Shown here in pieces: positions 3,001-50,988 of a stretch of DNA of 64,000 nucleotides (position 1 is the first letter of the stretch; each line of letters begins with the position of its first letter). The notes beneath the pieces are model-generated. The model made no database searches. It was not told where the DNA came from and saw only the letters and a list, made by a program, of their open reading frames with translations. This DNA comes from Bugula neritina (Eukaryota; Animalia; Bryozoa), in NCBI GenBank assembly GCA_964035545.1, contig OZ037765.1, positions 34,533,504 to 34,597,503 on the forward strand. The letters are read 5' to 3'. Made by a program: the position numbers and the translations under genes.

Positions 3001-3927
3001 AGTATAATATTATAATATATCTCAGTATAACATTATAATATATCTTAGTATAACATTATAATATATCTTAGTATAACATTTTAATATATCTCAGTATAAC
3101 ATTATAATATATCTTAGTATTATATTATAATATATCTCAGTATAATATTATATTATATCTCAGTATAATATTATATTATATCTCAGTATAGTATTATAAT
3201 ATATCTCAGTATAATATTATATTATATCTCAGTATAATATTATAATATATCTCAGTATAACATTATAATATATCTCAGTATAACATTATAATATATCTCA
3301 GTATAATATTATAATATATCTCAGTATAATATTATAATATATCTCAGTATAACATTATAATATATCTCAGTATAACATTATATTATATCTCAGTATAACA
3401 TTATATTATATCTCAGTATAGTATTATAATATATCTTAATATAACATTATAATATATCTCAGTATAACATTATAATATATCTCAGTATAACATTATAATA
3501 TACCTCAGTATAACATTATATTATATCTCAGTATAATTTTATAATATACCTCAGTATAACATTATAATATATCTCAGTATAATCTTAAAATATATCTCAG
3601 TATACATTATATTATATCTCAGTATAACATTATAATATATCTTAGTATAATATTATAGTATACCTCAGTATACATTATATTATATCTCAGTATAACATTA
3701 TAATATATCTCAGTATATTATTATAATATATTTCAGTATAATATTATAATATATCTCAGTATAATATTATAATATATCTCAGTATACATTATATTATATC
3801 TCAGTATAACATTACAATATATCTCAGTATAACATTATAATATATCTCAGTATAATATTATAATATATCTCAGTATAACATTATATTATATCTCAGTATA
3901 TTATTATAATATATTTCAGCATAATAT
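1..3927. repeat. 23-bp AT-rich tandem satellite (consensus ~TATCTCAGTATAACATTATAATA); continues off the left edge
   Basis: TATCTCAG recurs with period 23 (positions 1, 24, ...) with scattered variants. Confidence 0.98.
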
Positions 3928-4310
3928 TGTAGTGGGTCACGCGGTATCATAATGTAGAATTATCTCCTCTCCGTTCGGGGAATACTAAAGGCCCCAATGT
4001 ATTATCTAATAAGAAGTACCGGAAGATGATTTTCCGGCCCAGTGGCAGTTCCAGGGTAGTGAGCGGTTATCACGTTGTTGTGAGCGAGGACTCGAAGTGT
4101 GTACACGTATTATTAGATGACTATTGTATTACTATAATTTGATGTAATGTTTTATACTGTGTTTATTATGGATAATAAAGATTATTTTATGGCTACTACC
4201 CTAATAATTACTAGTTAGAAAAGCATACTGAATACGCAAGCAAAACCCACGCATAGTAATTGTGCAAATTACAACAGTGGTGGCAGCGGTGGGATCTTGC
4301 GTACATCAGG

Positions 4311-9606: not shown

Positions 9607-9750
9607 CTGTTTGGTAGAGTTGACAGTTTACAGCTACCCATTTTCAACTTTCTCAATGATAGTAAGGATGTGAATATATTGTCAGGTAGACCTTCACATA
9701 GCTTATTCTCTGATATATCCAATACCTCAAGATTCTTCAGTGAAGATATG
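9607..9750 (-). CDS. LRR cassette exon 7 (ISSLKNLEVLDISENKLCEGLPDNIFTSLLSLRKLKMGSCKLSTLPN)
   Basis: 144 nt, CAG| .. |GTGTGT, phase 2-2, two LxxLxL repeats. Confidence 0.9.
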
Positions 9751-12700: not shown

Positions 12701-15700
12701 GCCCCCTATTGGGGCTTGTTATGTCAAAAAACCCACAGTTTAAATTTGGCTCTATGTTAGTGAGTAAAATGTTTATGCATTTAGTTTTGATAGAAAAAAG
12801 CAGCAACATATGACTGACTTTTATGGTGCTGATCTTTGAACTGGCAAAAAGCTTCTTCAAAACTTGTACTCAAAAACGCAAGTTTTAGTTAAACTAGCCC
12901 CACGCTCTCTTATATCAAAATACCGTAAGCTTCCACACAATTATATTGGCAATATATTTTCATATTATATTTATTACAGCATCATTCTACATTACAATAT
13001 AATACACACCTGTTTGGTAGAGTTGACAGTTTACAGCTTTTCGCGTTCAACACTCTCAATGATAGTAAGGATGTGAATATATTGTCAGGTAGACCTTCAA
13101 ATATGTTATTCCTTAATATATCCAATACCTCAAGATTCTTCAGTAAAGATATGCTGTAACATAATATACAGGTATGAAATGTTGTATAATATTTTAGTAA
13201 GAATATAACCACAGCATATAACTCATTGAACATGACGCCAAATCTACTTTCACTAACAAAGTATTGAGAGTTGTCATCTACCTGAATATTAAGTACACAT
13301 GTACTGCACCAATCACTCTATAATCATATTTAAACAGCCAAGTCATGAATTAATATTGTATGGTTAGTAGAGTTTCTCCTACTCTATATTATTATATATG
13401 TAATTATATAATACACACCTGTTTGGTAGAGTTGACAGAGAACAGTCCCACATGTACAACTCTCTCAATGATAGTAAGGATGTGAATATATTGTCAGGTA
13501 GAGCTTCAAATAGGTAGTTATGTGATATATCCAACACCTCAAGATTCTTCAGTGAAGATATGCTGTAACATATAACACACGGGTAGAAAATCATCAAAGT
13601 CTATTGAACTCCTGGGTATTATCATTAGCACTCTACATTTCACTCAACAGTGTAATAGTAGTATAGCTTAATTTATATCAGTAGACCGTTTTCCAAGGAA
13701 TTGAAAGGTTAACAGATCTAAACAAAGTGGTGACAGTCAGCACAACAAATAAATAAAGGAATTCATACCTCAACTGCTCTTCAGCATTGCTCAATAACCA
13801 AAATCACGAAAATGCTTTCAAATTTACTTTTTTTCAAAACTTATTATGAAGAAATGTTTGTAAAATATTTCTTGAACTGCTAATATGTGTGCTATACCAG
13901 AATATCTATCTAATATAAGAACAATTCCATGGCATAGTTGGGATTTTAAATAACAGTCAAACTTTAAAGTTGTAATTAGTTTGTTCTCTATAAAACATGG
14001 TTTAACTCAATCCCTGTTGAAGAGGACTCAACTCCTAACTTGAAATTGAGTACCGGGGGGGGGGGGGGCATTGGAAAAGGGTCTGTATTATCACCTGTTC
14101 TCAATATAACCTATTTAATGCAACATAGTTATATAGTTATACTGCAAAATAATTTACTTGTCCACATTTATTAGAGTAATAAGTGAGAAGTTGTCATACC
14201 ATTTCTATCTGAGTACATCTAATAGAATAGAATACAATAATTGACTTGTGACGAATAATATACACAGAATCTAGTTGAGTCAACAAAGATAGTGCAGATA
14301 ACTTCATAATGTATAATATAATACACACCTGTTTGGTAGAGTTGACAGTTTACAGAGCACCATGTTCAACTCTCTCAATGATAGTAAGGATGTGAATATA
14401 TTGTTAGGTAGACCTTTAGATAAGTCACTGAATGACATATTCAATACCTCAAGATTCTTCAGTGAAGATATGCTGTAACATAATAATTATATACAGGTGT
14501 AACAGTATATTCAATTCTACATAATTATCACATACTATTATATTATTATATGTTTATTGATATGTTTGAAAGACACCAACTCAGTTTAAATTGAAGCGTA
14601 AATAGAAATACAATAAATAAGGTAAATAATACAAAAGTTGTTACTAAAGCTAGTGTTATTGTGAGGGGAGATTACTCCACATTCTACTACAAGATAATAT
14701 CTCACTTATTAATATAGTTTTATATTATAACAATATAATACCTGGTCCAGTCAGCATTACTCTCTACTTCAGATACCCTCAGATGTGTGAGATGAGGAAA
14801 CAGTTTGTTGATATTTGGAGGAATGTCATCCTTCAGTACAACATGAGTCACTGTATGATGTCTACTTATATCATTGATCTCTTCTATAGTGTAGGATGTA
14901 GTATCATTCTTCATCCACTCATTACCAGCCCCATCTATACTGGATGTGTTGAACCACACACTGTACTTATCTATAAAATATGTGCAACTTTATAAATAAA
15001 AGTTTATAATAATAGAATGTTTGTAAACACCATCAATGCATAGAACCATAACTGGCAATAGTTACACAATAAACATTTTATATTTTAACTACTTAAAATT
15101 ACAGACAATTAAATTGAAATCCTGTGATATAATCTGAATGTATATTCAAGTTGTGCCCACTTTGTCAGACTATACCTAAGAGTATGACTCATCCCTGTAA
15201 CTGGTGCAGACGTCAACTATAGCAGATGACAGGTAAAGGGTAGCCATGTTGTTTATACTTCTGTACAGTATGTGTTATAGTATTCTAGTGTAATATAATG
15301 TAATATAAAGCAATATAATGTAATATAATGTAATATAATGTAATATAATGTAATATAAAGCAATATAGGTCAGTAAAATGTGCATGTTATATAACAGTTA
15401 ACTAAGGTTACTACAATTATTGTAACGTAACATGATGTAGGTTAGTATAATTGCTACAATATAATATAAAATAATAATAACACTTTATAGTATAGGTCAG
15501 CATCATATTTGTGACATAATATAATATATATGTCAGTATAACAATATATTATACTATAATATAGTATAATATAAGTCAGTATAATAATAATATATTATAC
15601 TTTAATATATTATAATATAAGCTTCAGTATAATAACATTATACAATAATGCACCCAGTTGTGGTCAACACAAAGTTAGGAGCAAAGTATTAAAAAGTTGA

Positions 15701-24371: not shown

Positions 24372-25582
24372 TCACTGTGGGAGTTGTCTGCCATGGAACT
24401 TTGGAAAGAAGAAAAGTTTTCTGAGGTGAGTGAAAGTACATTCCTGACAATTAGGTACATTACCACCAGCTGCTTCATCTCCTGTCTTCTTACAATATGC
24501 AATACTGACTCGTCTAACTCTGTCTTGTATCTGTAAGTATAAATGGAAGAGAAATATAAAGCTGATGACTCAACAGTCAACACACTCCACAGTATCATAA
24601 AAAGAGTAATACTGAAGTACTTACTATCCTAAACAGCTCGCTAACATCTCTGTGACAGCTGTGTCTGTAGAATGTAGCCACCAGTATTCTGATAAACCAG
24701 GTACCATAATTCTTATTCCTACCAGCCTTGTAAGCTGCAACACGTGAAAATGAGCAGTTAAATATGAATGTCAGACTATTATGTAAATTTGTTTATATTT
24801 AAAAATTGCAATAGCTTTATTTACATGCAACAGTTTAATTTGCACCAATAAAAGTTTCAGTCAACTCAAATATAATTTTCTTCTCACTAACTTTCTGTAC
24901 TTGGCTTCACAATGTAGAAGTCATCAGCATCTAGGTGAGTGAATCTATCAAAGTGAATATTTGGAGACACATGTTGACCTGCAGAAGACTCACTCCCAGC
25001 TGTCGCAGAAGATGAGGGTAGAGGGGTTGGTGTTGGTGGTGAAACGGTGTCTGGGCTTTGTGACTGTGCAGCATTACCAAAGTCAGTTCTGCCTGTGTTG
25101 AAATACATACAATGTAGACTCTGTGGTATGATGGTGAGTAATAAGTTGGGACTGGACTCACAGGCAGAACTCTATTACACAGCACTGGTTATTGGATTCC
25201 AGTTATGAGGTGTAGCTCACTTCCACATAGGCATACTCCAATAACATCAGGCATCTTGAAAATAATGATTCATCAAATAAATTAATGTTATAGTTATAGG
25301 AAATTATGCAATCTAACTGCTAGTTCTAGTAACATGAGGAACAACTCTGCATTACTCACTGCCAGAACAAGCATGGAAGATGATGAGTTTGGGTTTTCCT
25401 CTCATGGCAAGAAAGTTACTAGCTGCGAGTAAATCTTTGACTTCTGACAAGTTGACAGGTTTACAGTATTTGTCATAGAAGATGTTTCCAGAAGTTCCGT
25501 GTGACATGATGACTAGAATGAACATGCCAAGATCCTTGTGGTCTTTGTGGGTGGTCTCCTTCCTCACTTCTGATAATATCTC
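24372..25582 (-). CDS. Caspase catalytic p20 part, linker and p10 (4 exons)
   Basis: FILVIMSHG, LAMRGKPKLIIFHACSG, DDFYIVKPST, YKAGRNKNYGTWFIRIL, TFTHLRKLFFFP: C14A caspase motifs. Confidence 0.92.
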
Positions 25583-28500
25583 CTGGCAAAATAAAAGTAT
25601 ATATTGGTGTGTAAAATCAAGTTTGGATAAGTAAATGTGTCTACGCACGAGCCAAAGCTGCTTCAAAATTACGTTATAACATTTATAACAAAGATGACCC
25701 ATTAAGCAGTGCTGCTGTTTCTAAACTAAAACTCGGAACTGAGAAAAACTAATAATTTGAATACAAGTTAACAACATATTATTGTAGATTTGTTGGAATA
25801 CAATGCCTCGGTTCTGCAGTAAAAATACTTGCTATATATTGTTGTGAAATTATGCTTCACTGCAATCAATGGGTCTATTGAATGAAACCCACTTCGCCAG
25901 GTTTACTAATTGCTAAGAGTTTATTAACTTCAAATTACACCATAAAAGAATAACACCAACTAACACAAAACAATTACATAATTGAGAGCTCACTACACAC
26001 AACTGTACACTAACAAGTCCAAATCTTCTCTGCCGGCTACGCTGCCTAACTAGCTCCCACTACAGTTAGCAGCTACGCCTACTAATTAGCCTGTCAGCCC
26101 TCCTTGATTGGCCAAGACGATCAGGCCATCCTAGCAGCCTGACACCAGCTGCTTCACTCAACTGTCGGCGAGAAGTATCCTTTCGATACAAATACAAAAT
26201 ACTAATAATCTACTAATAATACAATTATTAATACTATTAACACACTATGAAAAACCCTTACACTCTCCCTTCCTATCAAAAGGTACTACTCAAAAAAAAC
26301 AAATAAAAGAAATATAAAATAATACAAGGGTAACACAATCAGAATAAATGTCACGTAAACTTTAAAACATTGAGAGCAATTAACAGCTCGCCAGCAGGGT
26401 TTGATGTGTCTCTTCACCAGATCATGTAGGGGAGCACGAATATAGGAAAAAAGGTTGTACGTTCACACATCTGGTCCTGTAGTCCTGGATGCAACCACAT
26501 GACGGGGGGGGGGTTTAGGAACACGCTCACCTAGTCAGAGCCAAGCACGCATCTCGCCGACGCCGGTGGTCCAGAAGAATCAAGCATGACAAAGAAAAAT
26601 TCCCCTAAGGAAAGGGGGGGGATCGTCACCATTTCCTTCCTCATAGGGTAGTGTCGAGCGCCAGCAGTCCATGCTGATTAGTCGGTCGAAATACCGAAGG
26701 GGGGATATAGAGTTCGTCCTCAGGCTATTTTTCTTTCTTCTATTATCATGATTGTTATTATTATAGTCCATCTTCGTATCGAGATGTAGTTACTTTCATG
26801 CAGTATTTTATATTACTATTAAATTGCGGTTATGTTTATTACTGTCATTACGATTACGATTCGCCTCCTTCAGCACCAATGTAAGGTGATCGAGCCACGG
26901 GCGAGAAAAGGGAAGAACTCCTTTTGTCTTTTGTTGGTTGCTACTGCTCATCACGGGGGTCGTAGGGCACCATCCGCCACGACAGTCACCAAGTCTGCTG
27001 TGCAGTCAAGCCAAGCAGTCAAGTCAAGCCAAGCAGTCATAATGTGAGTCAGCACCATGAGCACACGAATGCCAAGAGTCAGTGAACATGCAGATGAGAA
27101 TGATGGGTGACTGCGTGACGGTGGTGCAAAGAGAAAGAAATGCCGCTCCGCTAATAAAGTCTCACCTGCAACAGAATGCCAGAAACTGTTGAAGGGGTTT
27201 TTACCTGGTCAGTACGACACCTCGACTGAGTCTCGCAATCTAGTAACCCACTGATTCTTAACAAACCACGCGGGCGACTGCCTCACTCAAAGTCGTCAGT
27301 GAAATTACCTGACTTAGAAAACCAGCCTTATTGTTATGATAAAGCGAGACTGATTTTAAGCTACCAGTTTGAAATCCATTTAAATAATAGAATTATACTA
27401 GTAGACTTACCATAGGACAGCCACGACGTTAGTCTACTGCCCACTTAGGCCTCATAGTTTGCCAGCTTGCCAAGTGCGTGCTCGCACGTTGGCAGTTGAA
27501 ATAGAAAAGAACGCTCTTTGCAGTGAAAGTGATTACAACACACCCCCTTTCACTAGCGAGCTGGCTTCGCTCTTTTCTATACCCCGGTGGTGTTATTATG
27601 GTATATATTTACACCACTGGGTAAGCAACTCACAGTTGTGTTTCCTTGTACTTAGGAAATGCAACTCTCAGTTGCTTATCTCCCCAGATTTTTTTTTTAT
27701 GATAGCTGATGGATGTTTTTCCACTGCATCACACAAGAAATCTTTCAAATAAGATGGTGGCGCCCTAGTGCGTTGCCTACGCTCAAACTGCTCTGGGGAA
27801 TTTGCTGCTGCTGGTGACTCTTCCACCACGGGTGGTGTCACCAGTACGGGGGGGGGTCCACCAGTACGGGTGGTCCCTTCTCAGCTGCCTCTTCCTCATG
27901 AATTTGAGGAAATTCCATCTCATCCGGGACGACAGGGGTGTCGGCCCGCTCCACTGGTGGTGGGGCCAGCTGGGACCGGTCTTCCGGTGTGTCGGCCTCC
28001 TCCTCCTGGGGTGGAGGTGGCCGGGGCAAGTCGGGCGGCGCGTCGGCCGCCCTCTCCTGACCTGGCAGTATCTCCTCTATCTCTCTGTATGCCATGCCTC
28101 GCCCCCTCATAGGAGGGCGTCTAGCAGGCTCTAAGAGAGGAGGTGCTTGACCTGCTGCATCAGGGTTTGTCCAGTAAGGTTTCAGATGTGCTTCTTTCTG
28201 GACCGACACTTTTCCAGACCGATCCACTTTGTAGGTGTGATTGGGCATCACCTCAATCATGCAATAAGGACCCACGAACTTCGGCTGCAACTTAGCCACC
28301 TGTCCACGCTGCCGGCGATGACTGGTCATCCAGACCCAGTCCCCCACCTTGTACAAAGGGGGAGTCATCAGGATCACCACTCCTGACCTGCCACTGCTGC
28401 TCACGTAGCACCTCGTGAGCTGTCCTCATGCGTTTTACGAGCTCATCCACATAATCATGGACGCTGCTCTCTGGAGCCGGAACGTGGTAAGTTACGTGCT

Positions 28501-31500
28501 CAGGAACCCTTGTTTCTCTCCCCAGCATGAGAAAGTTAGGGGTCTTCAGTGTACTGGAGTGAGGTGTACTACGGTATGCTCGCATGATTTGCGGCAGTAC
28601 CAAGTCCCACTCTTCCTGGCTTTTACTGATAAGCAGGCTTCTCAATGAGTCCACTAGCGTTCGGTTGTTCCTCTCCACAACCCCATTCTCTTGCGGGTGA
28701 TACGGGGTCGTCCGACTCTGGTTTACCCCCCACGTTTCACAGAGATCGCTCATAAGTTGCGACTGAAACTGGGCGCCTTGATCAGAGTGTATTTGTTCCA
28801 GCAAGCCGAAATAACAGAACACCTGCTGATCCAAGGCTCTGGGCACCGTGACGGCCGACGTATCTGGAATAGCCAGTGCATCAGCCCACTGCGTGAAATG
28901 GTCAGTTAACACCAGTATCCAATTATTACCTCTCACTGTCGTGGGCATGGGTCCTACCAGATCTACAGCGACTACTTGCCACGAACGACCGGCATGGAGG
29001 CGGCGCCTCCTTGCGGTCTCAGTGGAGCGACCATGCTTGCTAGCTTGGCATATCTCACACTTCCGCACCCGGAGTCGGACATCCCGGGTCATACCGGGCC
29101 AAATCACTGGAGTTGAAGACACCTGGTCACCCGCCCAGCCCCTGCATGAGCTTGCTTATGGGTGTCCCAGATCAACTCCTGCCTCAGAGCGGACGGACAG
29201 ACTACCCTTTCTCGTTCCTGGCGATTGGTGCCCGCTGCTAGCGTTATCACTAACAGCCCATCGCCATTAAACCAGAGGGAGTCCCAGCGGTCGCAGAAAT
29301 ACTTAAACTCCGCACACCTGACCCGCTGTTCGGCCTCACTAGGCCGACGTCCCTCCTTCTTGGCCCAGACTAGATCAGCTACTACCCTTGGTAGCGTAAC
29401 TTGGAGCCGACACAGCTCCCTGACGTTCTTGAGCAGCGTGGGGTTTGCATGAAGGTTGTTAACAGCTTAACTAAGGGTTTCGGACCAAAGTTTTCCTTTA
29501 TCCCAGCTGTATATACCTGCTTTTCCCGCCTGTTCTTCAACGTCCGAGCGAGGAGGTCCGCCATCCCTACGCTCGATATGTTGGCATTGCTTACACCTAT
29601 CTGCCTGGCGGCGGCTCAGTCCGTCGGCATTACCGTGTTTCTTACCGGGTCGGTGCTCGATCCGATAAAAAAACTCTGCCAGGATTTCAAGCGAGCGCGC
29701 TACTTGGCTAAATGGTTCAGCCCGTCGACACAGCCATATCAAAGACGCATGGTCCGTTCTTAGCCTGAACGTGCGTCCGTACAGGTATAGTCTAAAGTGT
29801 TTAACCGCCTTGACTACTGCCAGGAGTTCTCTCCTGGTGGTGCAGTAGTTCTTTTCAGGCGCCAACAGGGCCTTACTATAGTAAGCTACCACCACCTTGC
29901 GACCATCTTGGACCTGAGACAGCACAGCCCCCACATTGTGGTTACTGGCATCAGTACCCAAAATGTACTCCTTCGCCGGATCAGGATACGCCAGGATGGG
30001 CGCCTCTACCAAGCGATCCTTGGGGTGGTCAAATGCCTGCGGTTCTGTCTGCGTCCACTGCCATTGCACCCTCTTTGCTGTCAGCCGGTTTAGTGGCTGT
30101 GCAACTTCTGCGAAGTTCGGTATGTACTGGCGATAGTACCCTACCAGTCCCAGGAATGCCCGCAATTCAGGGAGGTCGACAGGGACAGCTCAGTCCCTCA
30201 CAGCCCATACCTTCTCGGGGTCGGTGGGGACCCCAGCTCGACCAACTACATGGCCCAGGTATTTAACTTCTTGCTGCAACAACGTGCACTTAGAGGGCTT
30301 GAGCTTCAGACCAGCAGCTCGAAGTCTGTCAAACACCTCTCTGAGCCGACTGACATGTGTATCGAAGTCGGGGCAGATGACAATGACATAATCGAGATAG
30401 ATGAGCAAGGTCTTCCAGTGCAGCCCACTCAGGACCTGCTCCATGAGCCGCTGGAAGGTGGCCGGTGCAGACGTAAGTCCGAACGGCAGTACCTTCCATT
30501 TCCAGAGCCCATCCCGCGTAATAAACGCGGCCTTGTCCTGTGCATCAGGACTCAGGGGCACCTGCCAATACCCGCTTAACAAGTCCAACGTGCTGAAGAA
30601 CTTGCTACCAGCTAAAGCATCTAGCGACTCATCAATCCTAGGAAGAGGGTAACCATCCTGGATGGTCACGCTGTTCAGTTTGCGATAATCCACGCAAAAC
30701 CGCCAGCTCCTATCCTTTTTCCGAACCAGAACAACTGGCAACCTCCAAGCACCATCGGCTGGCTCAATCAGATCCCGGCTCAGAAGGTCTTGCACCTGTC
30801 TGCTCACTTCCTTTTCCTTCTCAGGACGTAACCGGCGAGTCGACTGCCTGGTAGGCACCGTCCCAGCCGCCAGGGGTATCTCATGACAGACAGCCTTAGC
30901 CAGGCCCATGTCGTGATCGCCACAACTGAACAAATCCTTGTACTCAGAGAGGAGCTGCACCTCTACTAGGCATTCCCGCTTGCTCTCACAGCCATCACAA
31001 GCATCCCCATACAATTCCACCAAGTGTTCAGGCACCGGCCCCCTGCCGTCCCTAATGGATACCCGTCGAGCCTCGTCCGCTGTTTCTAGGGCCGGACCAA
31101 CATCCTCTTTCTGTATGGAGTGGAATTTTCCCACTAGCGACTCAGCCGGCAATTCTACTGACTCCGTGAAAGGGTTTATGCACTGTACCAGGAACTCCCC
31201 CCGCTCATCCAGCCTATTCAGACTGTTAGCGAGCTGGACGCCCCCCAGTGCTTCCTCCACCACTCCTAAATCGGAGATTTCCCTACTGTTCACTTTGCAG
31301 CGTACTGTAGCCCGAAAGCGCCCAGGTACAGTACAACTCTGTACCACCTGCACTCCCCCCACCAAGGGTTGGCCAAATCGGTCGACACAGGCCAGCTCAC
31401 GTCCGGCCATCACCACCGCCGACTTGCTAAAGTCGATGTAGCACCTGTGTCACTTCAGAAATGGCATGCCCAAGATGGCGTCCTCCTTGAGTTGACTGAC

Positions 31501-34500
31501 GATAAAGGTCTCGCTGATCGTCTGATCACGGACTCGACCAGTCAACTCTATCACGCCATAAAAAGGAATACATGACCCGTCCGCCAACGTGCCATGCTCC
31601 CCATCATATGGCTTCAGGCTAGCCTGGTCCCCAGCATTGAGTGTGTCAAACAGACGCCGGCTCAGAAGGTTTGTGGTACACCCAGTATCCAATAGGAATG
31701 TGGCAGCTTTTCCGGGGAGGAAATAGCTGCTTCCATATGGCTGGGCGCTCATTGAGCAATTTGTCTGTGGAGGTGACACCTCGGGTGCATGGGCTTGGGA
31801 ATGCACCTGCGCTTTCCGGTTGCGAGGGGGTCGTCGACGTTGCGTGGGCAAGCGGGTTACATCTCGGTCTTTCTCACACACGGGCGGCCGAGTGAATGCT
31901 CGGTCCTGCGCTCGTGTGGGCAACCGAGGGTAATCCTTGTCTTGCTCCCACTCGTCGTACACTCCATCATCAGGCAAACCTTCAAAGTGGTTTTTGAGTG
32001 CTCAAGCCGGAGGTTTTGGCAGGCCTTGGAGCCTACTAACTCTCCTTGGGGCTTGCCACTTCAGTGAAGGCGGCCTCCTCACCCGATTGGGTTTGGGCCT
32101 TGGCCTTCGCCTCGGAGGGTTAAACCGAGGCCCACAGTTGGCGGAGTCTACCGTGGGCCGCTCCTTTAACTGCCTCCCTCTACCGTGGGGGCAGCTTTGC
32201 ATGAAGTGCCCACCACTACCACAACCCCAACATACGGGGCCGCCTCCTGTCGACAGCTGCCGACAACCTGGAGGGTTGCTCGACTGTCGTTTGTTGGCGT
32301 AGTTGCCTGATCTCAGCCAACAGCTCTTGAATCAAGCTTGTGGTTAAGCTAGTCGGCTGCCGCCGTGGCGACATGTACAGCTGTCTTGGCCGACCTCGTC
32401 GACGTCGACGCGTCGTCGTTGTCGGCCTCGACTTGCTGCAATGTTGCCCCAGGCCGGCACGTACTGTTGGCTTGGAAATAAGCATTCCCAAGCCTGAGAG
32501 CTCGCTCCATAGTCTCAACCTCAGCCACCAGCAGTTGTTGCTTCAGCCCTAGGTTGTTATTAGACTGGAGGAAAGCATTTAGCGCCAGACTCTGCCAACC
32601 ATTCGCAGGCAAATTGCCATAGGCGATTTGTGCTAGCCGCTCAACTACGGTGGCGTGCTCTCTCAAGGTAGTCTTAGGATTTCTCCTAAGTCCTTCGAGC
32701 TGCACCCGAGCATCCCGAGCAGTAAGCCCAAATCGAGCTCTTAACGCCTCAAAGATCTCGCCGATGTCCGGGCCAATCCCATAGGGTTTGGCCGGCCCGT
32801 CAGACACAACCGTAGCTGAATCAGAGTAACCCTGGCAGGCCATTGACAGATGGCCGCCACATCACTGAACTCAGTGATAAATTGCTCCACATCTTCTTCT
32901 CCAGAGAAGATGGGAGCGTGCAAGTGGTACCTGTCCATAGGCAGCGCTGGGCCGCCTATGCCGTCCTCCTCCATAGCTACTGGTTGTTGACGAGGTAGAT
33001 CCTTTTCGTCAGCCATCTTTCACTCCCTGGCTAGGAGCATTTACAATAATTAAATCCCACCGCTGCCACCACTGTTGTGAAATTATGCTTCACTGCAATC
33101 AATGGGTCTATTGAATGAAACCCACTTCGCCAGGTTTACTAATTGCTAAGAGTTTATTTGCTTCAAATTACACGCAAAAAAGAATAACACCAACTAATAC
33201 AAAACGATTACATAATTGAGAGCTCGCTACACACAACTGTACAGTAACAAGTCCAAGTCCTCTCTGCCGACTACGCTGCCTAACTGGCTTCCACTACAGT
33301 TAGCAGCTACGCCTACTAATTAGCCTGTCAGCCCTCCTTGATTGGCCAAGATGACCAGGCCATCCTAGCAGCCTGACACCAGCTGCTTCACTCAACTGTC
33401 AGCGAGAAGTGTCTATTCCATACAAATACAAAATACTAATAATCTACTAATAATACAATTATTAATACAATTAACACACTATGAAAAACCCTTACAATAT
33501 CACAGCTAGTTACAGCCTGGGGAGAATCAACTACAGGAAAGGATAAGAAATTGATACAGTAACCTGTTTACTCAGGTCAAACAGAGGATCATCTTCATGG
33601 GCTACAACAAATCCCATGTCTTTCAACAAAGTTTTGATGTTAACATAGTCGATGTATGAACCATCTCGGGTTGCCTTAGTCAGTTCACTGCCATCATCTC
33701 TAAAGAATCTCTCATTGTTTATGATCATGACACGACCTCTAACAGGGTCAGTCATCGCATAAACCTGTAAACCAATCAATTTTATCTCACTAAAAGTAGA
33801 CAACTGAAAATGGATGAATGAAATCAAATATGAAATGTAATAGAAACTAAATGGAGAGCCATAAAAGCAAAAAATATTAATAAATGATTTAAAAGAAATA
33901 AAAAAACTTGTTTTACCTTTCGGTGGTTGTCAAACAGGTGTTTCACTGGTTCATTGTTGGTAGGTTTCAGCTGCATACCCTCAACCTGACATATAAAAGG
34001 TTCAAGGTCATCTTTAGTAAAATCAGCATATCCTTCCTCTTCAACATCAGAGCATTCACTGATGTTGTCGTTTTCAACAAGGACTGAGGTAGTTTGAGTT
34101 AACAAATTCTTTTCTCCACCCATCTCTAAAATAAAACAAAAGGTGATATATTCAGTGCTAAGTAACAGATACTAAGTATCATAATAACTATAAACAATGA
34201 ACAGAATCAATACTTGAGTGTTTTTCTGTCAATAATTATACAAATGAATTGGAACAATTGAAGGTGTGTGAGCTTCGGCAGAGAGCCCACAGTTGGTTTA
34301 AGGTCATACTTTTCATTTTCTGGCTCTTTGCCAGGTGCTTTATGTTCTATATGAACAATGTTCCACTGATAGCTCGAACAGGTTGAATGTCACAGGAACA
34401 AAAAAAATATGAAAAGATAAAGAAACTTATGTTCTCCAATATACTTTTTTATTTTTTTCAAAAGCCAATTCATGTTTAAGTTATAGCTTGTTGAAAAACA

Positions 34501-37500
34501 TAGTCCCCCTTCCACATTCTTTTCAATTTATACGCTCCTGACTTGTTATTGTGTCTCAATATGCCTTGTATTTGAGTGCTTGTTAGTCTCGCTTCACTAA
34601 CTTTGCCTATACTTCACAAGTGCCAGTGCTGCTGGCTCAAAAGCTAAATGTTATAAACTGTCAGCTAAAACCCAATCTTGTATTCCTAGGTTGGTTGGCC
34701 TAAATAAAACAATAGTCAAATCATGATTTCATGTTTTAAAAATTTACTCTATTCTAACCTGCTGCCTAGCTAGTTCTATTTTTGATGTATAATTACAAAA
34801 TTTGTGATACATTTTTTTGGCAACCATGTGATTTATAAAATGCAGTAATGGTACTTATAATATTATATTATTATCATTATAATATATTATATAGTATTAT
34901 GTGTGTTTTTATTATACTGCATAATATCTATTTTATTATTGTTGTTGTGCAAACAAGTGCAATTAACCTAGTTTTCAAAATGTACCTCTAAATTATCAGA
35001 ATATCAGTTTAGATATTTTCATGCTTTGTAAGGTAAACCTAAAAAAAGAGGCTGTATTCCCAAAGTAAAGGGTGTTGAACTATGAACTATATTAGATTAG
35101 CCACTCTGCTACCAAGTGCATTAGTATAATATTATATGAATAGCTCTAATGCTTTGTCTCCGGTGGCTGGCTGCGATATGATAACTTGGCCAACTTCCAA
35201 GAGTTTAAAATTGGCGCAATTATTCAAGAGGTTACATACTGCACAGAGCTAGCAGTGATAGTAACCTTGCTATTGGCAGTACTTATTACAACTGCCAGCA
35301 TATAAGCTGCATTGTAGAATGCCGTTGGGGTAGGCTAGTAAAACCAAATTCTGCTCTCTAATATACCTTAGACACAATGCAGCAACATAATTGTTCATTT
35401 CAAATTACATTGCCACCCTTACATGAGCTGTGGGCTTCATAAAGATTCATATGATTAGAGATTTATGCTATAGGCTAGCTATGATGAAAATAACACACCA
35501 TTGTCAAAGTTAACTTCAAGTATGTTGTTTTCCAGAAACTCAGTAATGTCCATTTATCTCTCGCATACAAATACTTATGTAATAGCATACAGTTTAAGTT
35601 TTATTTTAGAGCACATCTGCAAACTCTACAATAAGAGCTTGCTTTACCAGTCTATTTCAGACCTGTTTTTGTAGCTAGTAATACGCAAGCTACTTATTTT
35701 TAAACTTTTGGGTTATTTGTTCAAAACCATTAGCTTTGCTAGTAACCCGAGACTATTGCAACAGTTGACTGCTATCAACATGAATTGACAGCCTAATAAT
35801 TATAACCCATTTGCGCGCGAAATATTTATGTAATGATAGTCACTCATATAGTGCGCGTCTTTTTAACGATGACTGCGTGGTCCAGAGGTTAGAGGCGTCA
35901 GCGACGAGTTGGTTGGTCAAGGTTCAACCCTGGTTGTTGCAATTTTTTTTGTCAACTTATGCAAATCCTACGCATGTATAATAAATATGGCTATAATTGT
36001 AAAGTTTTTTTTTTAACTTTTGTTCAACAGTAAGACAACATACATGCATAATAATTAGATACTGAACACTGGACTAAACCTTAAATTGATCTTATAGAAT
36101 ACAATGTACTTAAAATAATCATATGTGAATTAGAGAAACTGAAAGTATACACCTGCTGCGCTATAGACAGACCTTTACTGACAAGACTGCAAAGTGAAGT
36201 GATTTAGCTGAAATTAACTCTGCCAAACAAACAAAGAATTATGTTGTGCTGAGGCATTTTCAATATATTATTGTAACATAGTGAGATGATTCAGCTAAGT
36301 GCTAATGTAAAACAGGGAACATTATGTTGGCAGAAATCCAATAGATTGCCAATTTGTGCGAGAGGGTACTATATGTTATTGTGATAGCGCAGAGCGGCAA
36401 ACGTACTAGGAATGTTATAATTAGTCACAGGAGCGTAGCTAGAACCACCATATGATGAATTTAGAAAATTGCAGTGAAACTTGCAAAATGGTGTATGTTT
36501 TTACCAAATTGTGAAGAGCATAGACAGAATTTCAAAAAACAAAGAAAGTATATTAGAGAAAACATATCAAGGAATGTCAAGTTTAACTTTTAGACTTTAT
36601 AAAATGAATCCCCTGTGCTACAGCAGTGGAACATGGAGGGTGTAAAATTTTACTTATTATGCAACAACTTTCTCAGAAAATTTTTTATTGAAAAATTAAA
36701 AAAGTATATGAAAGAGGAATGCAAGAGCTATCTTTTCATGTAAAATTTGTTAATGTGAGACAAAAACTGTTCGAGCTATCCCCTGGAAACCGTTTATATA
36801 TAACATAAAGCAGTGCCTGAATCTGGAAAGTAATGACCTTAAACTAACTGTGCCTATCTAATTTGGTGTCATGGGTTCTTGTCTATTGCTGTTTACATAT
36901 GACTGAGCTCACGCAAAGGATGTTATTTGTAACAGTAACAGTTTATAATAAAAACCTGATCGTACCAGGGGCAGTTGAAGCAGTCTCTTCTCTTGCAGAT
37001 CTCAGTTTGTTGACACATTCTTTTATGTTATCAGCTTGTTCTGGAGAGAGGGGACTGCCTGGAGAACAAAACATTGCCAGTTACCACAAAAATTCTTATA
37101 ATAATAAAAGTTGATAAAAAAACAACAGAGAAACCGACTATTTCGCATGAAGTAAAATTACACGTACATGGATACAGAAGAGCACTGAGTATCTCCTCAT
37201 CACCACACAGGGTTGTTGAAGATCCACTGCACAGTCTGGGACTTGTTGGTGTGGAATGTTTCAAGGAACGAAGACACCATGGAGGATTCAGTACTTTCTT
37301 AGGACAAGGAAGTCCTAGCAGAAGGCAGTGAGCACAGTAGCATGTAGTGACTGGTCTACTTGCTGGCCAAGTTTGTAGAACAGGTCTAATGATGTTGTTG
37401 TTGGTGGTGATGAGTGTCTCCCACATTCTGCTGATGTTGGCAGCATTAGATGACACGTAGAGTAACACCTTTCTAGATGTATAATCGTGTACCAGCTGTG

Positions 37501-39173
37501 TGTAGATTCCATTTTGATAAACACTGGCTCCATTTCTTCTCACTTTAATCACAGCAAACTCATCAGGAAACGACTCCAGCAAACCAACACTCATCTGCTG
37601 ATAGACATAGTGTGGCAAGGCTAGACCATTGAATTTAGTTTCAACTCGAAGGAGCATGTTTTTTGGCGAGGAGTAAGAGGTATTAAAAAGGTCATTAGCA
37701 AACTGGGGAACAATAAAGCAGGGCTCCTTGGAATCACTAGGTAAAGGACCATATAACAAACGGAATGTTTGAAGCAAGCACACAGCAACTTCTACGTTTT
37801 CCAGACTGGTAAATGATGTTTCCTGTTTAACCAGATGAGTGAGAAGGCATTGCATCATCAAACCAGTCTCAGCGAAATGATTAACAAATTTCTCAAAGTC
37901 TTCTTTTTCAACAGGCATCCTATCCTCTGAAAAGTATGGCTGGAACTTGTCAACTCTACTCTGCCATATGTTAGCATCATGATGATACAAAACACAGAGA
38001 AGTTTGGTAACTTCTGAAATCTTGTGGAATATGTATGGCCGGAGAGAGCTGATATCTTTATACCACAAGACTTTGCCACAGTCATGCATGTATGTGAGGA
38101 TTATGTCTAGCTGACTCGGCTCAATGTGTTGATGTTGTGTTTGTACGTAGTTCAGTATCTCATCAAAAGTGCTGTACACAGAGGGAATAGACAGAACTTT
38201 TTCATTTACTTCCTCCCAGACCAGAGGTAAAGGTTTCACAAAATGGTGACTGCTTTGGAGAAGAGACTCCTTGATCAGGTCAAACACTTCATACTTATCA
38301 TCTTTCCCCACTTCATAAATGTCCTCATCAAAAAAGACTCCTTCAGTTGATTCAATGAAATGTTTGATTTGAGCAAATTCTCCACCCAATGCTTTCTCTT
38401 CTCTAATCATTGCTTCACACAGTTGATTGGAAGTTTCTAGAAAGTTTTTCCGAAGCTCCTGAAACTCCACATTTTGAAACTTATCTTTATGTGTGAAAAT
38501 AAGTTTTGGAGCACCCAGAGTTGGGTTAGCCAGATAGAGGTGAGACATGTAATCAAAGGCTAATCTTCTAACAGCTTCTCTGTGTGTTGATTCTCTTGAA
38601 ATCTCCTCATACTGCTCTATGTTGACTACTATGACTGGAATACAGTTCTGTCTCAGTGTCAGTTGATAGGTGATATGGTAGACCTCCTGGCCTCCCATAT
38701 CAATGAGACGGAGTACTGTACCATCCACCTCCACCTCTTCAACATTAAACACCTTTGTTGCCTCATCTCTCACAGCATCTGGCCCTCTGTCGGTCAGAAC
38801 TCTCTTTCTGTCAGCATTCTGTAATGTTCTGATTAGACTGGTTTTCCCAACCATGGTATTGCCCAGTACAGCTATAGTAGCAAATGGTAGACTTCTACCA
38901 GCACCTTTAGCCAAATCTGTGTAGTATTGTCTCACAGCATCTACTCCTCTCTCACATATTTCTAGTGGAGGAGATGTGAGAGCATTACAATATCTAACAT
39001 TCAGCATACGAAGTTGAGTTAGCTGTAGTATCTCAGGATCTAAAGATGTCAGGGAGTTATTAAAAGATATAGCCAGTATCTGCAGACTACTCAGTGTGTA
39101 CACAGGAGATGGTAAACTGGTGAAATTATTCCTGTATATGATCAGTTTCTTTAACTTCTGTAGACTCTGCATG
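24372..39173 (-). CDS. Gene B, 3' part: LRR-Roc-COR-caspase fusion; exons 39173-37168, 37058-36966, 34125-33917, 33764-33564, 25582-25360, 25092-24892, 24734-24625, 24530-24372
   Basis: Eight exons with AG/GT ends and matching phases (2|1|1|0|0|1|1|0), open frame to TGA at 24372-24374; Roc and caspase motifs present. Confidence 0.88.
25840..33496 (-). mobile_element. Ty3/Gypsy element G2, full length, decayed, in a caspase intron
   Basis: LTRs 25840-26262 and 33073-33496 (TG..CA); TSD ATAT; tRNA-Leu PBS 33054-33071; PPT beside 26263; gag-PR-RT-RH-IN order in broken ORFs 33016-27800 (RT motif YLDY). Confidence 0.97.
33564..33764 (-). CDS. Caspase p20 N-terminal exon of gene B
   Basis: VYAMTDPVRGRVMIINNERF..TRDGSYID..LLKDMGF; 201 nt, phase 0-0. 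Confidence 0.92.
34355..36795. mobile_element. Possible old DNA transposon in gene B intron
   Basis: Imperfect inverted ends sharing GATAGCTCGAACAG (~34368) and CTGTTCGAGCTATC (~36767); no ORF. Confidence 0.4.
35871..35950 (+). other. tRNA-derived (Pol III A/B box) SINE-like head
   Basis: TGGTCCAGAGG (35878) and GGTTCAACCC (35921) followed by an oligo-T run. Confidence 0.4.
37168..39173 (-). CDS. Large exon of gene B: terminal LRRs + Roc GTPase + COR
   Basis: LRRs then SPPLEIC..VRQYY cap; G1 GNTMVGKTS, switch-I EAT, G3 DMGGQEVY..T, G4 THKD; COR-type PLVW and LTYMHDCGKVLWY; begins AG|C ATG (phase 2). Confidence 0.93.
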
Positions 39174-39775: not shown

Positions 39776-42700
39776 TGTTGTGACTTACACAATCTAAATG
39801 CGTGGTCCCTAGCTTGTAATTATACGCTAATTATTCGCAGCAGTAGAGGGTTTACAGTGGGATTAGAATATATTTATTTACAGTTACATAATAATAAAAA
39901 GATACATATAAAACGATTCCACTATTTAATTACATCCTTTCTAGTCTATTGCGCTCTCTACTATATACAACATCCTTCAAATTATGCATCGCTGGGGGTT
40001 GTCACCTGACACATCTCTAATTGGTTGGGGGACACGTGGAGGCGCGTATTGCGTGTTCCACTACACCGCCCCCTCCCCCAGCAGGAAGCCTACCTTCCTG
40101 ATAACACAGATAAAAAAATAAAAAAATATAATAGTAGAGAAAATAAAAAAAAGGAAGAGAGATGCGTGGTACGTGTATAAAAAAAACACAATTACAAAAA
40201 AAAACATAAAACCGTATGAACATGGCACCGCATTAATAATAGTGAGAGGCACTTATAGGCCGACGGCCCATACGACTAAAAAATACTCTTATGGACTAGC
40301 TACCAAATTGTCATAGTGGGAGATTTATTTATGGCACCGGGTACGAGATAGAGGCTGTAAGTGAGGCATCACCTGCGGTAGAGTAAGGAATGGGGGAGTA
40401 GGACGAGTAGAGAAAGGGGGTTTAGATACTCCGTCTTATGCGTTCTTCTTCAGTTGGGCTACAGAGTCGCGGAGAGCCCGGAGTTTGGAGGCGGCGGCAG
40501 ATATCCTAGGCGCCAACCTTTGCACTTCTCTCTCTAGTTCACGTATCCGTTCTTCTGTTTCCCTTAGGTTCCGGGCGGGGGCAGAGTGACGGTTGGGAGA
40601 TGAAGATAGTCAACGTCATTTACAGGAGGATCTTGGAGAAACGGGAGGAGAGGGACGCCATCGTTGGGGCACTTTGATGCGTTGCAGCACGACTCTGGGT
40701 ATGGAGTTGGGACGGGGCACTGTGTGAGCGGGGGGAGTGATGAACGAGGCGTGGGTGGTTTCTTAAACCCCGGGGGCTTGAGGCAGGGTCCTTGTGTAAT
40801 GACACGGGGTGCGAGGAACTCTTGACGCAGCCGTTCATAGCGAGCCAGGTCTGAGATAAATGGCCTGAAGAGATCGAGGAAATGAGAGAAAGAGGGTTTG
40901 TCGACTTCGTAGAGATGTCCAACATGACATCTCACGGTCCGCTGATGACGGAGGATGTAGTCCCTGTGGTAACTATATTCACCACAGGGACAGAAGGTGG
41001 TGACATAACGTTGGGGGACGTAGACCCTGAGTCTGCGAGGGGTGGTGAAATGAAGCTGACACAGACGGCAGGTGGTGCATTGGTCATCGCCTTTATATTC
41101 TCGAATAAGTGCTTCAGTGTCCTTGGTAATCCAGCATGACTGGGTTAAAAGTATTTCCGGCAGCGTGACGGGGGTCGGTTCCTCATCCCATGCCATCTCC
41201 AACGGCGGCATGTCACGAGGGAGAGGAGAGTGAGTGGTATCTAAAAGAGCAGAATTATTGTTAGATCGAGTCTGATCTTTACAGCATAATTCTGATGACA
41301 ACCGACTGTTCCTAGTCTGGGAGTCATGCATCTTTTCATACGGCACTCGAAAGACTGTGTCGTGGCATGTAGACTGACTGAAAGACATAGTGTCAAGCTC
41401 CAGATCTAGTAGATCGTCGGCCATTGTTATGTTCTCGTCGCCTTTCACGTATGACTCAGTCCCCAGTAGTTGTGATTCAATCAGTGCGATTAAATCAGAA
41501 CTAACTGATGTTAGACCTATCTCCATGGATGGGAATGTTAGGTCAGAGCAAGCTTACCTGGGAACCCGGTATTTGAAATCATACTCAGCGTTCAAGCTTG
41601 GATGTTAGTGAATTGGATTTGGATACGTCTGCCCTTGGTGATGTCAGCGTAGGAAAAGACCGGACAGCGTGTTTGTTGCGCACGGCTGGAACTATTTGCC
41701 CCGGGCGTAGTAGTTTTGTCCACTACTCCGCCTTCGCAAAAGTTAGTATTCCCGTGGTGTACACAACTCCCACGTTTTGCTGCCAGTCTTTGCGTACGGT
41801 GCCCAGCTAGATTTTCATAACTGCCGCTTGTAACGCGGTCACATAGAAAGTCTTTTAAGTAAGCTGGGGGTTTTCTAGTACGTTGTCCCCGTTCCAGGGG
41901 AGGTGACGTACTAGCTGGGGAAGATGGTGTAGTTGTTGGTCGGGGCGGCGTACTCACTGGTGGGCTATTTTGCTCCGCCGGTGGTGTTTCTGGCCCGTCG
42001 TTAGTGATGGTATTTTATTCCCCGACATTGCCTCCGGATGTAGCCCCTCCCGCGGGGAGGTTTTGCACTTCCGGACGCGGATGCGGACCCGGAAGTGGTG
42101 GTGGTAGGCTCGGTATTGGGGGCGATGGGCGCACTTCTGTCGATGGAAGTGGCCTTTCCTGCCTTACTGAGTCCTCCTCTCGCGGCACAACCACTTCGTA
42201 TTCTGGCCCATGCCGCCGCCCGCGCCTTGCTGTCTGCCTTCTGGGCTCCAACAACAGGGGGGGGGGGTTCTCCTGCCGCTCCTGGGCTAGCCCAATACGG
42301 TTTCAAGCGGGCTTCATTCTGGACAGAGACCTGTCCAGAATGCTCCAACTTGTACGTATGATTTGGCATCGCCTCAACTACTACGTAGGGTTCCACGAAC
42401 TTAGGCTGGAGCTTAGCCGCTTGTCCTCGACGCCTACAGTAGTTGACCATCCATACCCAGTCTCCAATTTGATAGAGGGGTGGTTCCTGAGAGACCTTTT
42501 GCCGTACCTGCCACTGCTGTGTTCGCAGTATTTCATGTGCGGCTTTCAGGTCCTCTATCAATTTACTGGCATATTCAATAATGGTGTAGTCCTGTTCGGG
42601 GATGCGGTATGTGAGGTGGTCGGGCACTCGCGTCTCTCGACCAAGCATCAGGAGGTTAGGGGCCTCCCTCATACTGGTATGCGGTGTACTACGGTAGGCT

Positions 42701-49910: not shown

Positions 49911-50988
49911 CTAGAGTCCTTGTTGGGCACGCCGGTGCTTGGCTTGGCATGTACGCAGTTTCCGTTTCATACGGCATACGGATCCCTTTAGCTGGAAGAG
50001 TCCTGTTGTAGTGTTAAGTAGATCTGGTGCCAGCTGGGTGAATTCTTCTTGCAATCGCAGGAGGCGTTCTTCTACTGTGGCCAGGCGGACTGGGTCTGGG
50101 GACGGTGTCCGTCTGCGGCGCATGGGGGGACTGGGGGACCTGGTTCGTCTCTTCGTCGGGGTAGGGGAGATCTCTCCTTCTTCTGGATATGTAAACTCCT
50201 CGGGGGTGTATGTAATCTGAAGGCGGTCAGACACCAACGGGGATTGTTGGCGGGTGTTGTCTAATACACGTTGGAACCCCGAGGTCAGAACGGCTAACAG
50301 CATTGCCTTCTTCACCAGGGGTCGTATAAGTGTAAGGAACTCCGGGTAGAGCTTAGCGTCGACCACGTAGTTTTCTCCAAGGAAACAGCCCGTCGCTCGA
50401 TGTCTGGTGACGGGGTAGGGATAAACATCGTTGTACCCGCAGGGGCAGAATGTTAGTAGGAGATGAGCATTGACGTGTAGTTTCAGGGAGCGGTGAGAGG
50501 CGCATTCTTCACCACAAATCTGGCATCTCGTCCGTCCTCTGGACCCCCAGGCCGTTTCTATTTCTTCCTCTGTTTGTGGAGACACCCACCGCCAACGGCG
50601 GCATAGTGGCTCAGGCCGGTCACCACTAGCATACTCCTCCGGATGCGGAGCGGGAAGTGTTCTATCCCGTACCCTGGTTGTAGCGGGTCGAGTGTAATCT
50701 GAAAAAGTTTCAACAGTGTTAATACAGTACACTGCCGTGTTGTCAGCTTGAATAGCTTGGCAACTCCTAATTCAGTTACCTCGTAGAGATTTGTGGTAGT
50801 GAATAGTCAGATAGAACACGTATTGCAATGAGATTATAAAAATCTCTAAGTCAAACTGAGTTCTTACTACGGTATTTCACTAACCTATCTCCAGCTCGAT
50901 TGACTCAGTGAGTCGGAGCTGAGCGATGCAATCTAGTTTCGTATTAAGATATAGTTAACTCACCCCACGATCTGTTGTTGTAAGACAT
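49911..50988 (-). CDS. Spliced ORF3 of G4, intact, 270 aa (exon1 50988-50964, exon2 50698-49911): zinc finger + basic motif + coiled coil
   Basis: MSYNNRSW G|GTGAGT .. TTTTTCAG|AT; CQICGEECASHRSLKLHVNAH, CPCG..RH; RRTRSPSPPMRRRRTPSP; heptad C-terminus. Confidence 0.85.

Follow-up and report, generated by a model that had tools for sequence, protein, structure and literature searches.

We analysed a 64,000-nt stretch of the genome of the bryozoan Bugula neritina (assembly GCA_964035545.1, contig OZ037765.1, positions 34,533,504 to 34,597,503 of the forward strand), hereafter the window, whose minus strand carries a gene that joins leucine-rich repeats (LRRs), a Roc GTPase domain, a COR domain and a caspase in one predicted chain. 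Eight exons span positions 39172 to 24372 (Table 1); after their borders had been fixed by script, every acceptor was AG and every donor GT. Placed in series, these exons amount to 3201 nt, or 1066 codons by script count, with compatible phases and a terminal stop as the only one. An earlier note, made from the letters of the window, had claimed eight exons spliced in frame from LRRs through Roc and COR into a caspase, and the borders, phases and codon count agree with it. Along the chain the order is LRR, Roc, COR-A/B, an acidic linker of about 100 residues between the COR and caspase halves, and a caspase with its His and Cys. An alternative donor for exon 5 at 25356 was rejected because it breaks the frame. 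The product is an animal ROCO protein whose output domain is a caspase, and it belongs to a family that has grown large. We are highly confident that this is a true fusion gene family, and we consider it on balance probable that the copy in the window is intact and is one of many single-chain LRR/Roc-COR/caspase genes that form a large family in this bryozoan genome, specific to the lineage and arranged in tandem clusters.

The Roc-COR half lies in exon 1. Pfam domain searches were run exon by exon, not on the joined protein, and in exon 1 they returned Roc (1.6e-7, 32 bits against a cut-off of 27), LRR_4/LRR_8 and, weakly, COR-A (E = 0.0024). When exon 1 was aligned with 40 homologues, the GTP-binding residues G104, G109, K110, T139, D158, G161, T227, H228 and D230 were invariant or nearly so, and the Roc motifs read GNTMVGKT for G1, Thr139 in switch I, DMGGQ for G3 and THKD for G4. 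A profile derived from the alignment reaches LRRK1 (529-923), LRRK2 (1246-1607) and the Roco protein of C. tepidum. An AlphaFold2 model of exon 1 (668 residues; mean predicted local distance difference test score 88, predicted TM-score 0.86) gave as its best Foldseek matches, over nearly the full length, LRRK1 (9.4e-23), the C. tepidum LRR-Roc-COR structure 6hlu (1.7e-20) and LRRK2, and it also matched the isolated COR domain 3dpt (E = 1.1e-10, TM by target 0.63). In P0133, an amphioxus relative with an end-to-end alignment, Pfam has both COR-A and COR-B. The Pfam matches, the conserved GTP-binding residues, the profile and the fold matches therefore indicate that the Roc-COR tandem that defines ROCO proteins is present, as the earlier note had claimed from motifs G1 to G4, and that the Roc domain carries intact predicted nucleotide-binding motifs. 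A homodimer prediction for the COR part (residues 300-668, two copies) scored 0.00 and 0.00 and carries no weight either way. The tail that follows COR-B (residues 601-668) has a conserved Cys/His pattern of its own: C613 and C616 do not vary across the 41 aligned homologues, H615 and C656 hardly do, and this pattern may represent a small metal-binding knot that is not in Pfam.

The caspase half begins with exon 4, which matches the start of the Pfam Peptidase_C14 profile and is collinear with residues 1132-1193 of protein P0069 from the bryozoan Watersipora subatra. Exon 5 matches the same family at 7e-11 and aligns to residues 97-165 of human caspase-3 p17, with His121 (IMSHG) and Cys163 kept. 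For exons 7 and 8 the alignment is to the p10 of P0069, with 60% identity between exon 7 and residues 1340-1381; the whole caspase domain of P0069, as distinct from that of this gene, scores 1.5e-36 against Peptidase_C14. The claimed p20/p10 caspase with a His/Cys dyad is thus upheld both by Peptidase_C14 and by the alignment of the dyad to caspase-3. The active-site pentapeptide is HACSG instead of QACRG, which places His where the pocket Gln would be. HACSG is common to the closest paralogues, and the corresponding motif is E(T/V)CSG in a sister subfamily, QACSG or QACGG in Watersipora and QACRG in amphioxus; because the closest paralogues share it, HACSG is a subfamily trait and not decay. 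Both S1-pocket arginines appear to be kept, in TRDGS of exon 4 and AGRNK of exon 7, and the change from Gln to His in this pocket may shift the cleavage preference. No exon had a Pfam match to NACHT or NB-ARC. The chain, which has no CARD, DED or death domain, lies on a single reading frame, and its architecture recurs in paralogues and in other species.

To what extent the two halves belong together was also examined across the 216-Mb genome, in which 66 full-length exon 1 matches were scored out of 150 candidates, 64 of them free of stops. A caspase p20 exon lies downstream on the same strand in 63 of these 66 (median distance 1.6 kb), giving at least 63 Roc-COR-caspase genes, which form tandem clusters on contig C1 (33.8-35.1 Mb) and contig C6 (2.5-6.3 Mb). 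Five metagenome-derived contigs with 40-80% identity have the same exon order, and the Watersipora protein P0069 is collinear with the locus from the LRR cassettes through the last caspase exon. In the paralogues L001 and L008 all eight exons are collinear, and paralogues retain the splice sites of the 109-nt intron that follows exon 1. At least 126 caspase p20-like exons were counted genome-wide, together with one partial match to NACHT (profile positions 3-47); NB-ARC had no match in the 216 Mb, in a search whose sensitivity is reduced for genes split into exons.

The caspase end of these genes shows an uneven pattern of similarity. Exon 6 is 91-98% identical in L001 and L008, and the protein of exon 8 is 100% identical to that of L008, the immediate neighbour. 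Synonymous divergence (dS) from L001 is 0.16 in the caspase exons, about half of the 0.35 in the Roc-COR exon; this lower value and the identical exon 8 hint at gene conversion at the 3' end. Within the cluster at 33.8-35.1 Mb on C1, some paralogues share 88% identity with this copy in the Roc-COR exon, yet their p20 exon matches it at 91-97% in some cases and at just 46-47% in others. Close paralogues include two caspase types, HACSG and E(T/V)CSG, with His and Cys kept in both (L005, 13270-13497; L002, 13788-14015). Such decoupled identities of Roc-COR and caspase suggest that the effector half may have been exchanged between paralogues.

Evidence from RNA came from the contigs of four runs, which are Logan unitigs of 80-170 nt accepted at a likeness of at least 95%; run X1 is labelled as metagenomic RNA-Seq of a symbiont metagenome. 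An X1 contig joins 34125 to 36966 and skips 2840 nt with the ends CT..AC (GT..AG on the minus strand), which corresponds exactly to splicing of exon 2 to exon 3. For exons 3 and 4 there is a joint with the expected letter count in which two letters differ, and another X1 contig (36972-37063, with two unaligned end letters) is compatible with the splice between exons 1 and 2 but ambiguous. The path 37168>37058>34125>33764 that had been proposed for checking was therefore recovered exactly at its middle step and by length at its last, whereas its first step was not among the joints listed from the four runs' contigs. All four runs depart from the window at several positions, and the letters at the junctions are identical in the closest paralogues; because the unitigs are short, were accepted at 95% likeness and share these letters with paralogues, the RNA evidence holds for the family and not for this copy. 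A search for long transcript-derived Bugula-like proteins, with the full-length Watersipora protein as the query, returned only Watersipora and amphioxus, and the close homologues are all single-exon calls on genomic contigs.

The gene continues beyond the window. The acceptor at 39173 (ctctcag, followed by C) has a phase that matches LRR cassette exons of 144 nt, which begin with C and end with AG. Position 39172/39173 is thus an internal acceptor and not the gene start, and the ATG at 39172 encodes an internal Met. No LRR exons were found between 39173 and 64000, the part of the upstream intron that lies within the window; the gene runs on about 26 kb upstream of exon 1, past the window end, to four double-LRR cassettes and an N-terminal exon. 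Together they bring the full gene to at least 13 exons, spread over about 43.5 kb, and to a predicted product of about 1350 residues, a size that agrees with the Watersipora proteins. The gene model first put forward therefore had to be extended, as most of the LRR sensor lies outside the coordinates it covered. A counterpart of the N-terminal exon, with 86% identity, lies at 14989-14741, where it precedes the cassettes of the neighbouring paralogue L008. Across nine LRR cassettes compared, the overall ratio of nonsynonymous to synonymous substitution (dN/dS) is 0.98, and the variation is concentrated at the x positions of the LxLxxN/C strands, with up to seven residue types per column. This variability is the pattern of a putative diversifying binding face.

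We also considered the transposons that have entered the introns. The Gypsy/Ty3-type element between exons 4 and 5 has long terminal repeats of 434 bp (25840-26269 and 33070-33499) that differ by 25 mismatches in 433 aligned positions (K = 0.060), a 4-bp ATAT target duplication, and the order protease, reverse transcriptase, RNaseH, integrase, with pol split over several frames. Its place within an intron and its length of 7.66 kb agree with the earlier note, which had described an intact frame despite a 7.7-kb Gypsy in one intron. The 2553-bp element in the intron separating the Roco half from the caspase half has no long open reading frames, and at least 40 genome copies, from 334 first-look candidates, are 97-100% identical to it, one of them 100%; its contig depth was very high in all runs. 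Given the identity of these copies, the insertion must be very young, and the element looks like a non-autonomous DNA transposon that was active very recently. Three Gypsy-type elements lie in the upstream 26-kb intron, at about 40-47 kb, 50-56.5 kb and 58-62.7 kb. All exons are undamaged by the five transposons in these introns. An intron repeat was searched for tRNA-like parts and had none. Two of the upstream Gypsy-type elements are accompanied, on their 3' side, by a Cys/His-rich open reading frame placed where an env-like accessory gene would lie; on the minus strand, these frames encode 320 residues (40564-41526) and 273 residues (49911-50732). At the far end of the window, positions 1-4000 have a G+C content of 17% and a strong negative GC skew, as against 31-37% G+C in the transposon-free host DNA of the window, and are probably a simple or satellite repeat.

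Despite these insertions the coding sequence has been kept. Relative to L001, dN/dS is 0.19 in exon 1, 0.22 in the caspase exons and 0.37 in the linker exon 3, which indicates that all parts of the gene are under purifying selection. Since the Gypsy insertion, with neutral change taken as half the divergence of its terminal repeats, 4.3 nonsense changes would be expected in the 1066 codons under neutrality and none was seen (P = 0.014). The intact frame after the insertion therefore points to continued selection, or to gene conversion from intact paralogues. The distance from Roc to caspase, at 11.6 kb, is the longest of the 63 pairs, whose median is 1.6 kb.

Table 1. Features of the Roc-COR-caspase locus and its surroundings. 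Positions are those of the window; coordinates above 64000 are extended beyond its end.
Feature	Position	Strand	Remarks
N-terminal exon	about 67880-67617 (extended coordinates)	minus	precedes the four LRR cassettes
Four 144-nt double-LRR cassettes	67430-67287, 66833-66690, 66241-66098, 65732-65589 (extended coordinates)	minus	in the 10 kb past the window end; L007
Intron between LRR cassettes and exon 1	39174-64000 in the window; 26.4 kb in total	minus	three Gypsy-type elements
Exon 1	39172-37168	minus	3 terminal LRRs, Roc, COR-A, COR-B, Cys/His-rich tail; internal exon of the full gene
Exon 1, terminal LRRs (n = 3)	about residues 1-90 (38903-39172)	minus	Pfam LRR_4/LRR_8
Exon 1, Roc G domain	about residues 91-262	minus	P-loop GNTMVGKT at 38840-38863
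Exon 1, COR-A and COR-B	about residues 263-600	minus	
Exon 1, conserved Cys/His-rich tail	residues 601-668 (37169-37372)	minus	
Exon 2, first linker exon	37058-36966	minus	31 codons, in frame; donor and acceptor kept in two paralogues
Non-autonomous transposon	34300-36852 (2553 bp)		intron between exons 2 and 3; imperfect terminal inverted repeats of ~125 bp
Exon 3, acidic linker exon	34125-33917	minus	in-frame ATG at 34123; dN/dS 0.37 vs paralogue L001
Exon 4, caspase p20 start	33764-33564	minus	VYAMTDPVRGRVMIINNERF; S1-pocket Arg (apparently kept) in TRDGS; Pfam Peptidase_C14 positions 1-46
Gypsy/Ty3-type LTR retrotransposon	25840-33499 (7.66 kb)	minus	sense with the gene; intron between exons 4 and 5
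Exon 5, p20 core	25582-25360	minus	His in SHG, codon 25499-25501; Cys in HACSG, codon 25367-25369
Exon 6	25092-24892	minus	Ser/Pro-rich intersubunit linker with several Asp sites, p10 start; in frame
Exon 7, p10	24734-24625	minus	AGRNKNYGTWFI, counterpart of the caspase-3 SWR..GSWFI motif
Exon 8, p10 C-terminus and TGA stop	24530-24372	minus	
Neighbouring paralogue L008	seven 144-nt LRR cassettes at 9607-14472; N-terminal exon 14741-14989	minus	Roc-COR and caspase exons just before the window start

ROCO proteins such as LRRK2 and C. tepidum Roco form dimers through COR, in a state set by the nucleotide bound to Roc, and initiator caspases are activated by induced proximity. On this background we tentatively propose, at a chance that we place somewhat below even, that the protein is a receptor for cell death or immunity that is gated by its GTPase. 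The LRR cassettes would use their hypervariable concave face to bind a ligand or a guarded self protein, and the nucleotide state of Roc, together with the COR dimer interface, would bring together or release two caspase domains. Once paired, the caspases would be activated by proximity and process themselves in the Asp-rich intersubunit linker, with no need for a CARD or DED adaptor. In an equally good variant, the LRRs would form a lid over the effector, as in LRRK2. The most likely roles would be pathogen sensing, colony allorecognition or regulated cell death; the size of the family, its tandem clusters, the variability of the LRRs and the near absence of NACHT and NB-ARC suggest a role in recognition.

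Several points weigh against such a receptor. The C. tepidum Roco protein is reportedly dimeric without GTP and monomeric with it (work of Deyaert et al. in 2017), so that the switch could run in the opposite direction to the one first supposed. With the S1-pocket Gln replaced by His, specificity for Asp, and even activity, may not be retained, and the case for an immune function is drawn from family size, clustering and LRR variability. With regard to the copy itself, the five intron transposons, including the sense Gypsy and those of the 26-kb intron, could impair its expression; it has four LRR cassettes as against seven in the neighbour; and in the contigs of the four runs transcript evidence specific to this copy was not found, nor was the joint of exons 1 and 2 among those listed.

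This last gap bears on whether the locus might hold two neighbouring genes, namely an MFHAS1-like LRR-Roc-COR gene that ends by read-through at a stop at 37031, 137 nt past the exon 1 donor, and a short-prodomain caspase gene that starts from the ATG at 34123, which indeed stands at the head of exon 3 (AG, then ATG GGT). We judge this arrangement very improbable. The contig from the RNA-labelled run that joins exon 2 to exon 3 at GT-AG means that exon 3 was not the first exon in that RNA; the phases match across all eight exons, the splice sites of the 109-nt intron are conserved, order and strand are kept in 63 of 66 copies, RefSeq and UniProt hold single polypeptides from two phyla, and the dN/dS values against L001 (0.19, 0.37 and 0.22 for exon 1, linker exon 3 and the caspase exons) also speak for one gene. 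If the fusion is real, the family could still be functional while this particular copy is silenced or dying after five transposon insertions and the shortening of its LRR array. Its Roc-to-caspase distance, the three Gypsy-type elements of its 26-kb intron, the very young 2.55-kb insertion in the key linker intron, the four cassettes against the neighbour's seven and the lack of copy-specific RNA among the contigs would all fit such a fate. However, neither the 1066 codons nor the four cassettes nor any splice site is damaged, nonsense changes are absent where 4.3 were expected, and dN/dS stands at 0.19-0.22. Gene conversion could mimic both of these last signals, and we regard a dying copy as unlikely.

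The fusion may also be real and have nothing to do with immunity. The protein could serve developmental or housekeeping death, as in polypide regression or metamorphosis, or could be a non-lethal signalling protease with an autoinhibitory LRR lid. In solved LRRK structures the LRR domain packs against the effector domain, and these proteins are among the best fold matches here; ligand binding and a response to infection, moreover, are predictions. Yet more than 60 clustered paralogues with variation at solvent-exposed LRR positions form the pattern of recognition receptors, and NACHT and NB-ARC matches are almost absent from the genome, which leaves a non-immune role, in our estimate, rather improbable. 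Recognition could, at the other extreme, go further than the receptor that we propose: 60 to 150 such proteins would then be the main intracellular recognition and execution system of bryozoans, against pathogens or in allorecognition, with Roc-COR replacing the STAND ATPase and a re-tuned S1 pocket (His or Glu for Gln) cutting new substrates. We find this extended version possible but doubtful.

If these proteins are GTPase-gated caspases, they would couple sensing to cell death more simply than any system known in animals, in one chain and without adaptors. The control of an attached enzyme by the nucleotide state of Roc-COR, an open question for LRRK2 in Parkinson's disease, would become directly testable, and proteolysis or cell death would be a far easier readout to score than kinase signalling. 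The family would further reveal the substitute for NLRs in a group of animals that has hardly any, and would tie animal innate immunity to the bacterial LRR/AP-GTPase/effector systems as their animal counterpart. Should it prove to be the main system of bryozoans, it would stand beside inflammasomes and apoptosomes as a third, independent solution to coupling a sensor, a switch and a caspase. As for the present copy, a frame that is intact after a Gypsy insertion in the caspase-coding region would mean that the gene is still maintained by selection, a signal that gene conversion could mimic.

The architecture itself is on record in other animals. Watersipora subatra has at least nine single polypeptides with LRR, Roc/COR and Peptidase_C14, for example XP_067947674.1 (1419 aa) and XP_067948342.1 (1413 aa), most of which RefSeq names "MFHAS1 homolog". 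Branchiostoma floridae C3XQ16 (BRAFLDRAFT_67388; 1609 aa) has Roc, COR-A, COR-B and C14 all above cut-off, and isoforms of B. belcheri have the same single-chain architecture. A 2024 paper on lophotrochozoan apoptosis, in which bryozoans were not sampled, mentions one caspase with a ROC pro-domain in the annelid Owenia fusiformis (PMC11463336). A paper on amphioxus caspases mentions novel architectures, and Roc-COR-caspase is not among them (PMC3196919). ROCO reviews and a first search of papers yielded no animal Roc-COR-caspase, and searches on bryozoan immunity and caspases gave nothing relevant; neither a paper about the expansion in bryozoans nor a functional test was found. The suggestion in the earlier note that this architecture had not been characterised in animals thus holds for function and is too strong as regards existence, given Watersipora, Branchiostoma and Owenia. 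The architecture was already in databases and had been mentioned in the literature; its expansion in bryozoans and any function that it may have are undescribed in the papers that we found.

Among known proteins, the animal ROCO proteins MFHAS1/MASL1, LRRK1, LRRK2 and DAPK1 share with this gene the order LRR, Roc and COR-A/COR-B. They differ in output, which is a kinase in the LRRKs and DAPK1, none in MFHAS1 and a caspase here, and in number, since vertebrate ROCO proteins come from one to two conserved genes whereas this family has more than 60 copies with variable LRRs built from cassettes. The closest animal relatives, the Roc-COR-caspases of Watersipora and Branchiostoma, have the same architecture at 23-45% identity, with QACSG/QACGG and QACRG, respectively, in place of HACSG.

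The same order of LRRs, Roc-type GTPase, COR and C-terminal effector is found in bacterial AP-GTPase systems. Kaur, Iyer, Burroughs and Aravind (2021) described bacterial LRR-AP-GTPase (Roc)-COR proteins with one of at least 24 C-terminal effectors, a caspase among them (PMC8195603). These proteins were studied in silico only; they have fast-evolving LRRs, are predicted to act as switches against invaders, and several may occur in one genome (PMC8195603). The only metazoan effector that those authors named at that position is a kinase, that of DAP kinase (PMC8195603). The bacterial systems carry bacterial caspase-like domains, whereas the domain here is a p20/p10 caspase of animal type, with caspase-3 as its best alignment, and this gene, which is eukaryotic and has at least 12 spliceosomal introns, falls outside the prokaryotic AP-GTPase class.

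With NLR inflammasomes and the Apaf-1 apoptosome the gene shares a logic, that of a repeat sensor, an oligomerisation switch dependent on nucleoside triphosphate and a caspase activated by proximity. Unlike them, it has no NACHT or NB-ARC STAND ATPase and no CARD, PYD or DED adaptor. Its switch is a Ras-like GTPase with COR, and its caspase is covalently attached; where NLRs and the apoptosome form wheels, a dimer would be expected here. The gene may therefore be NLR-like in its action, but it is not an NLR.

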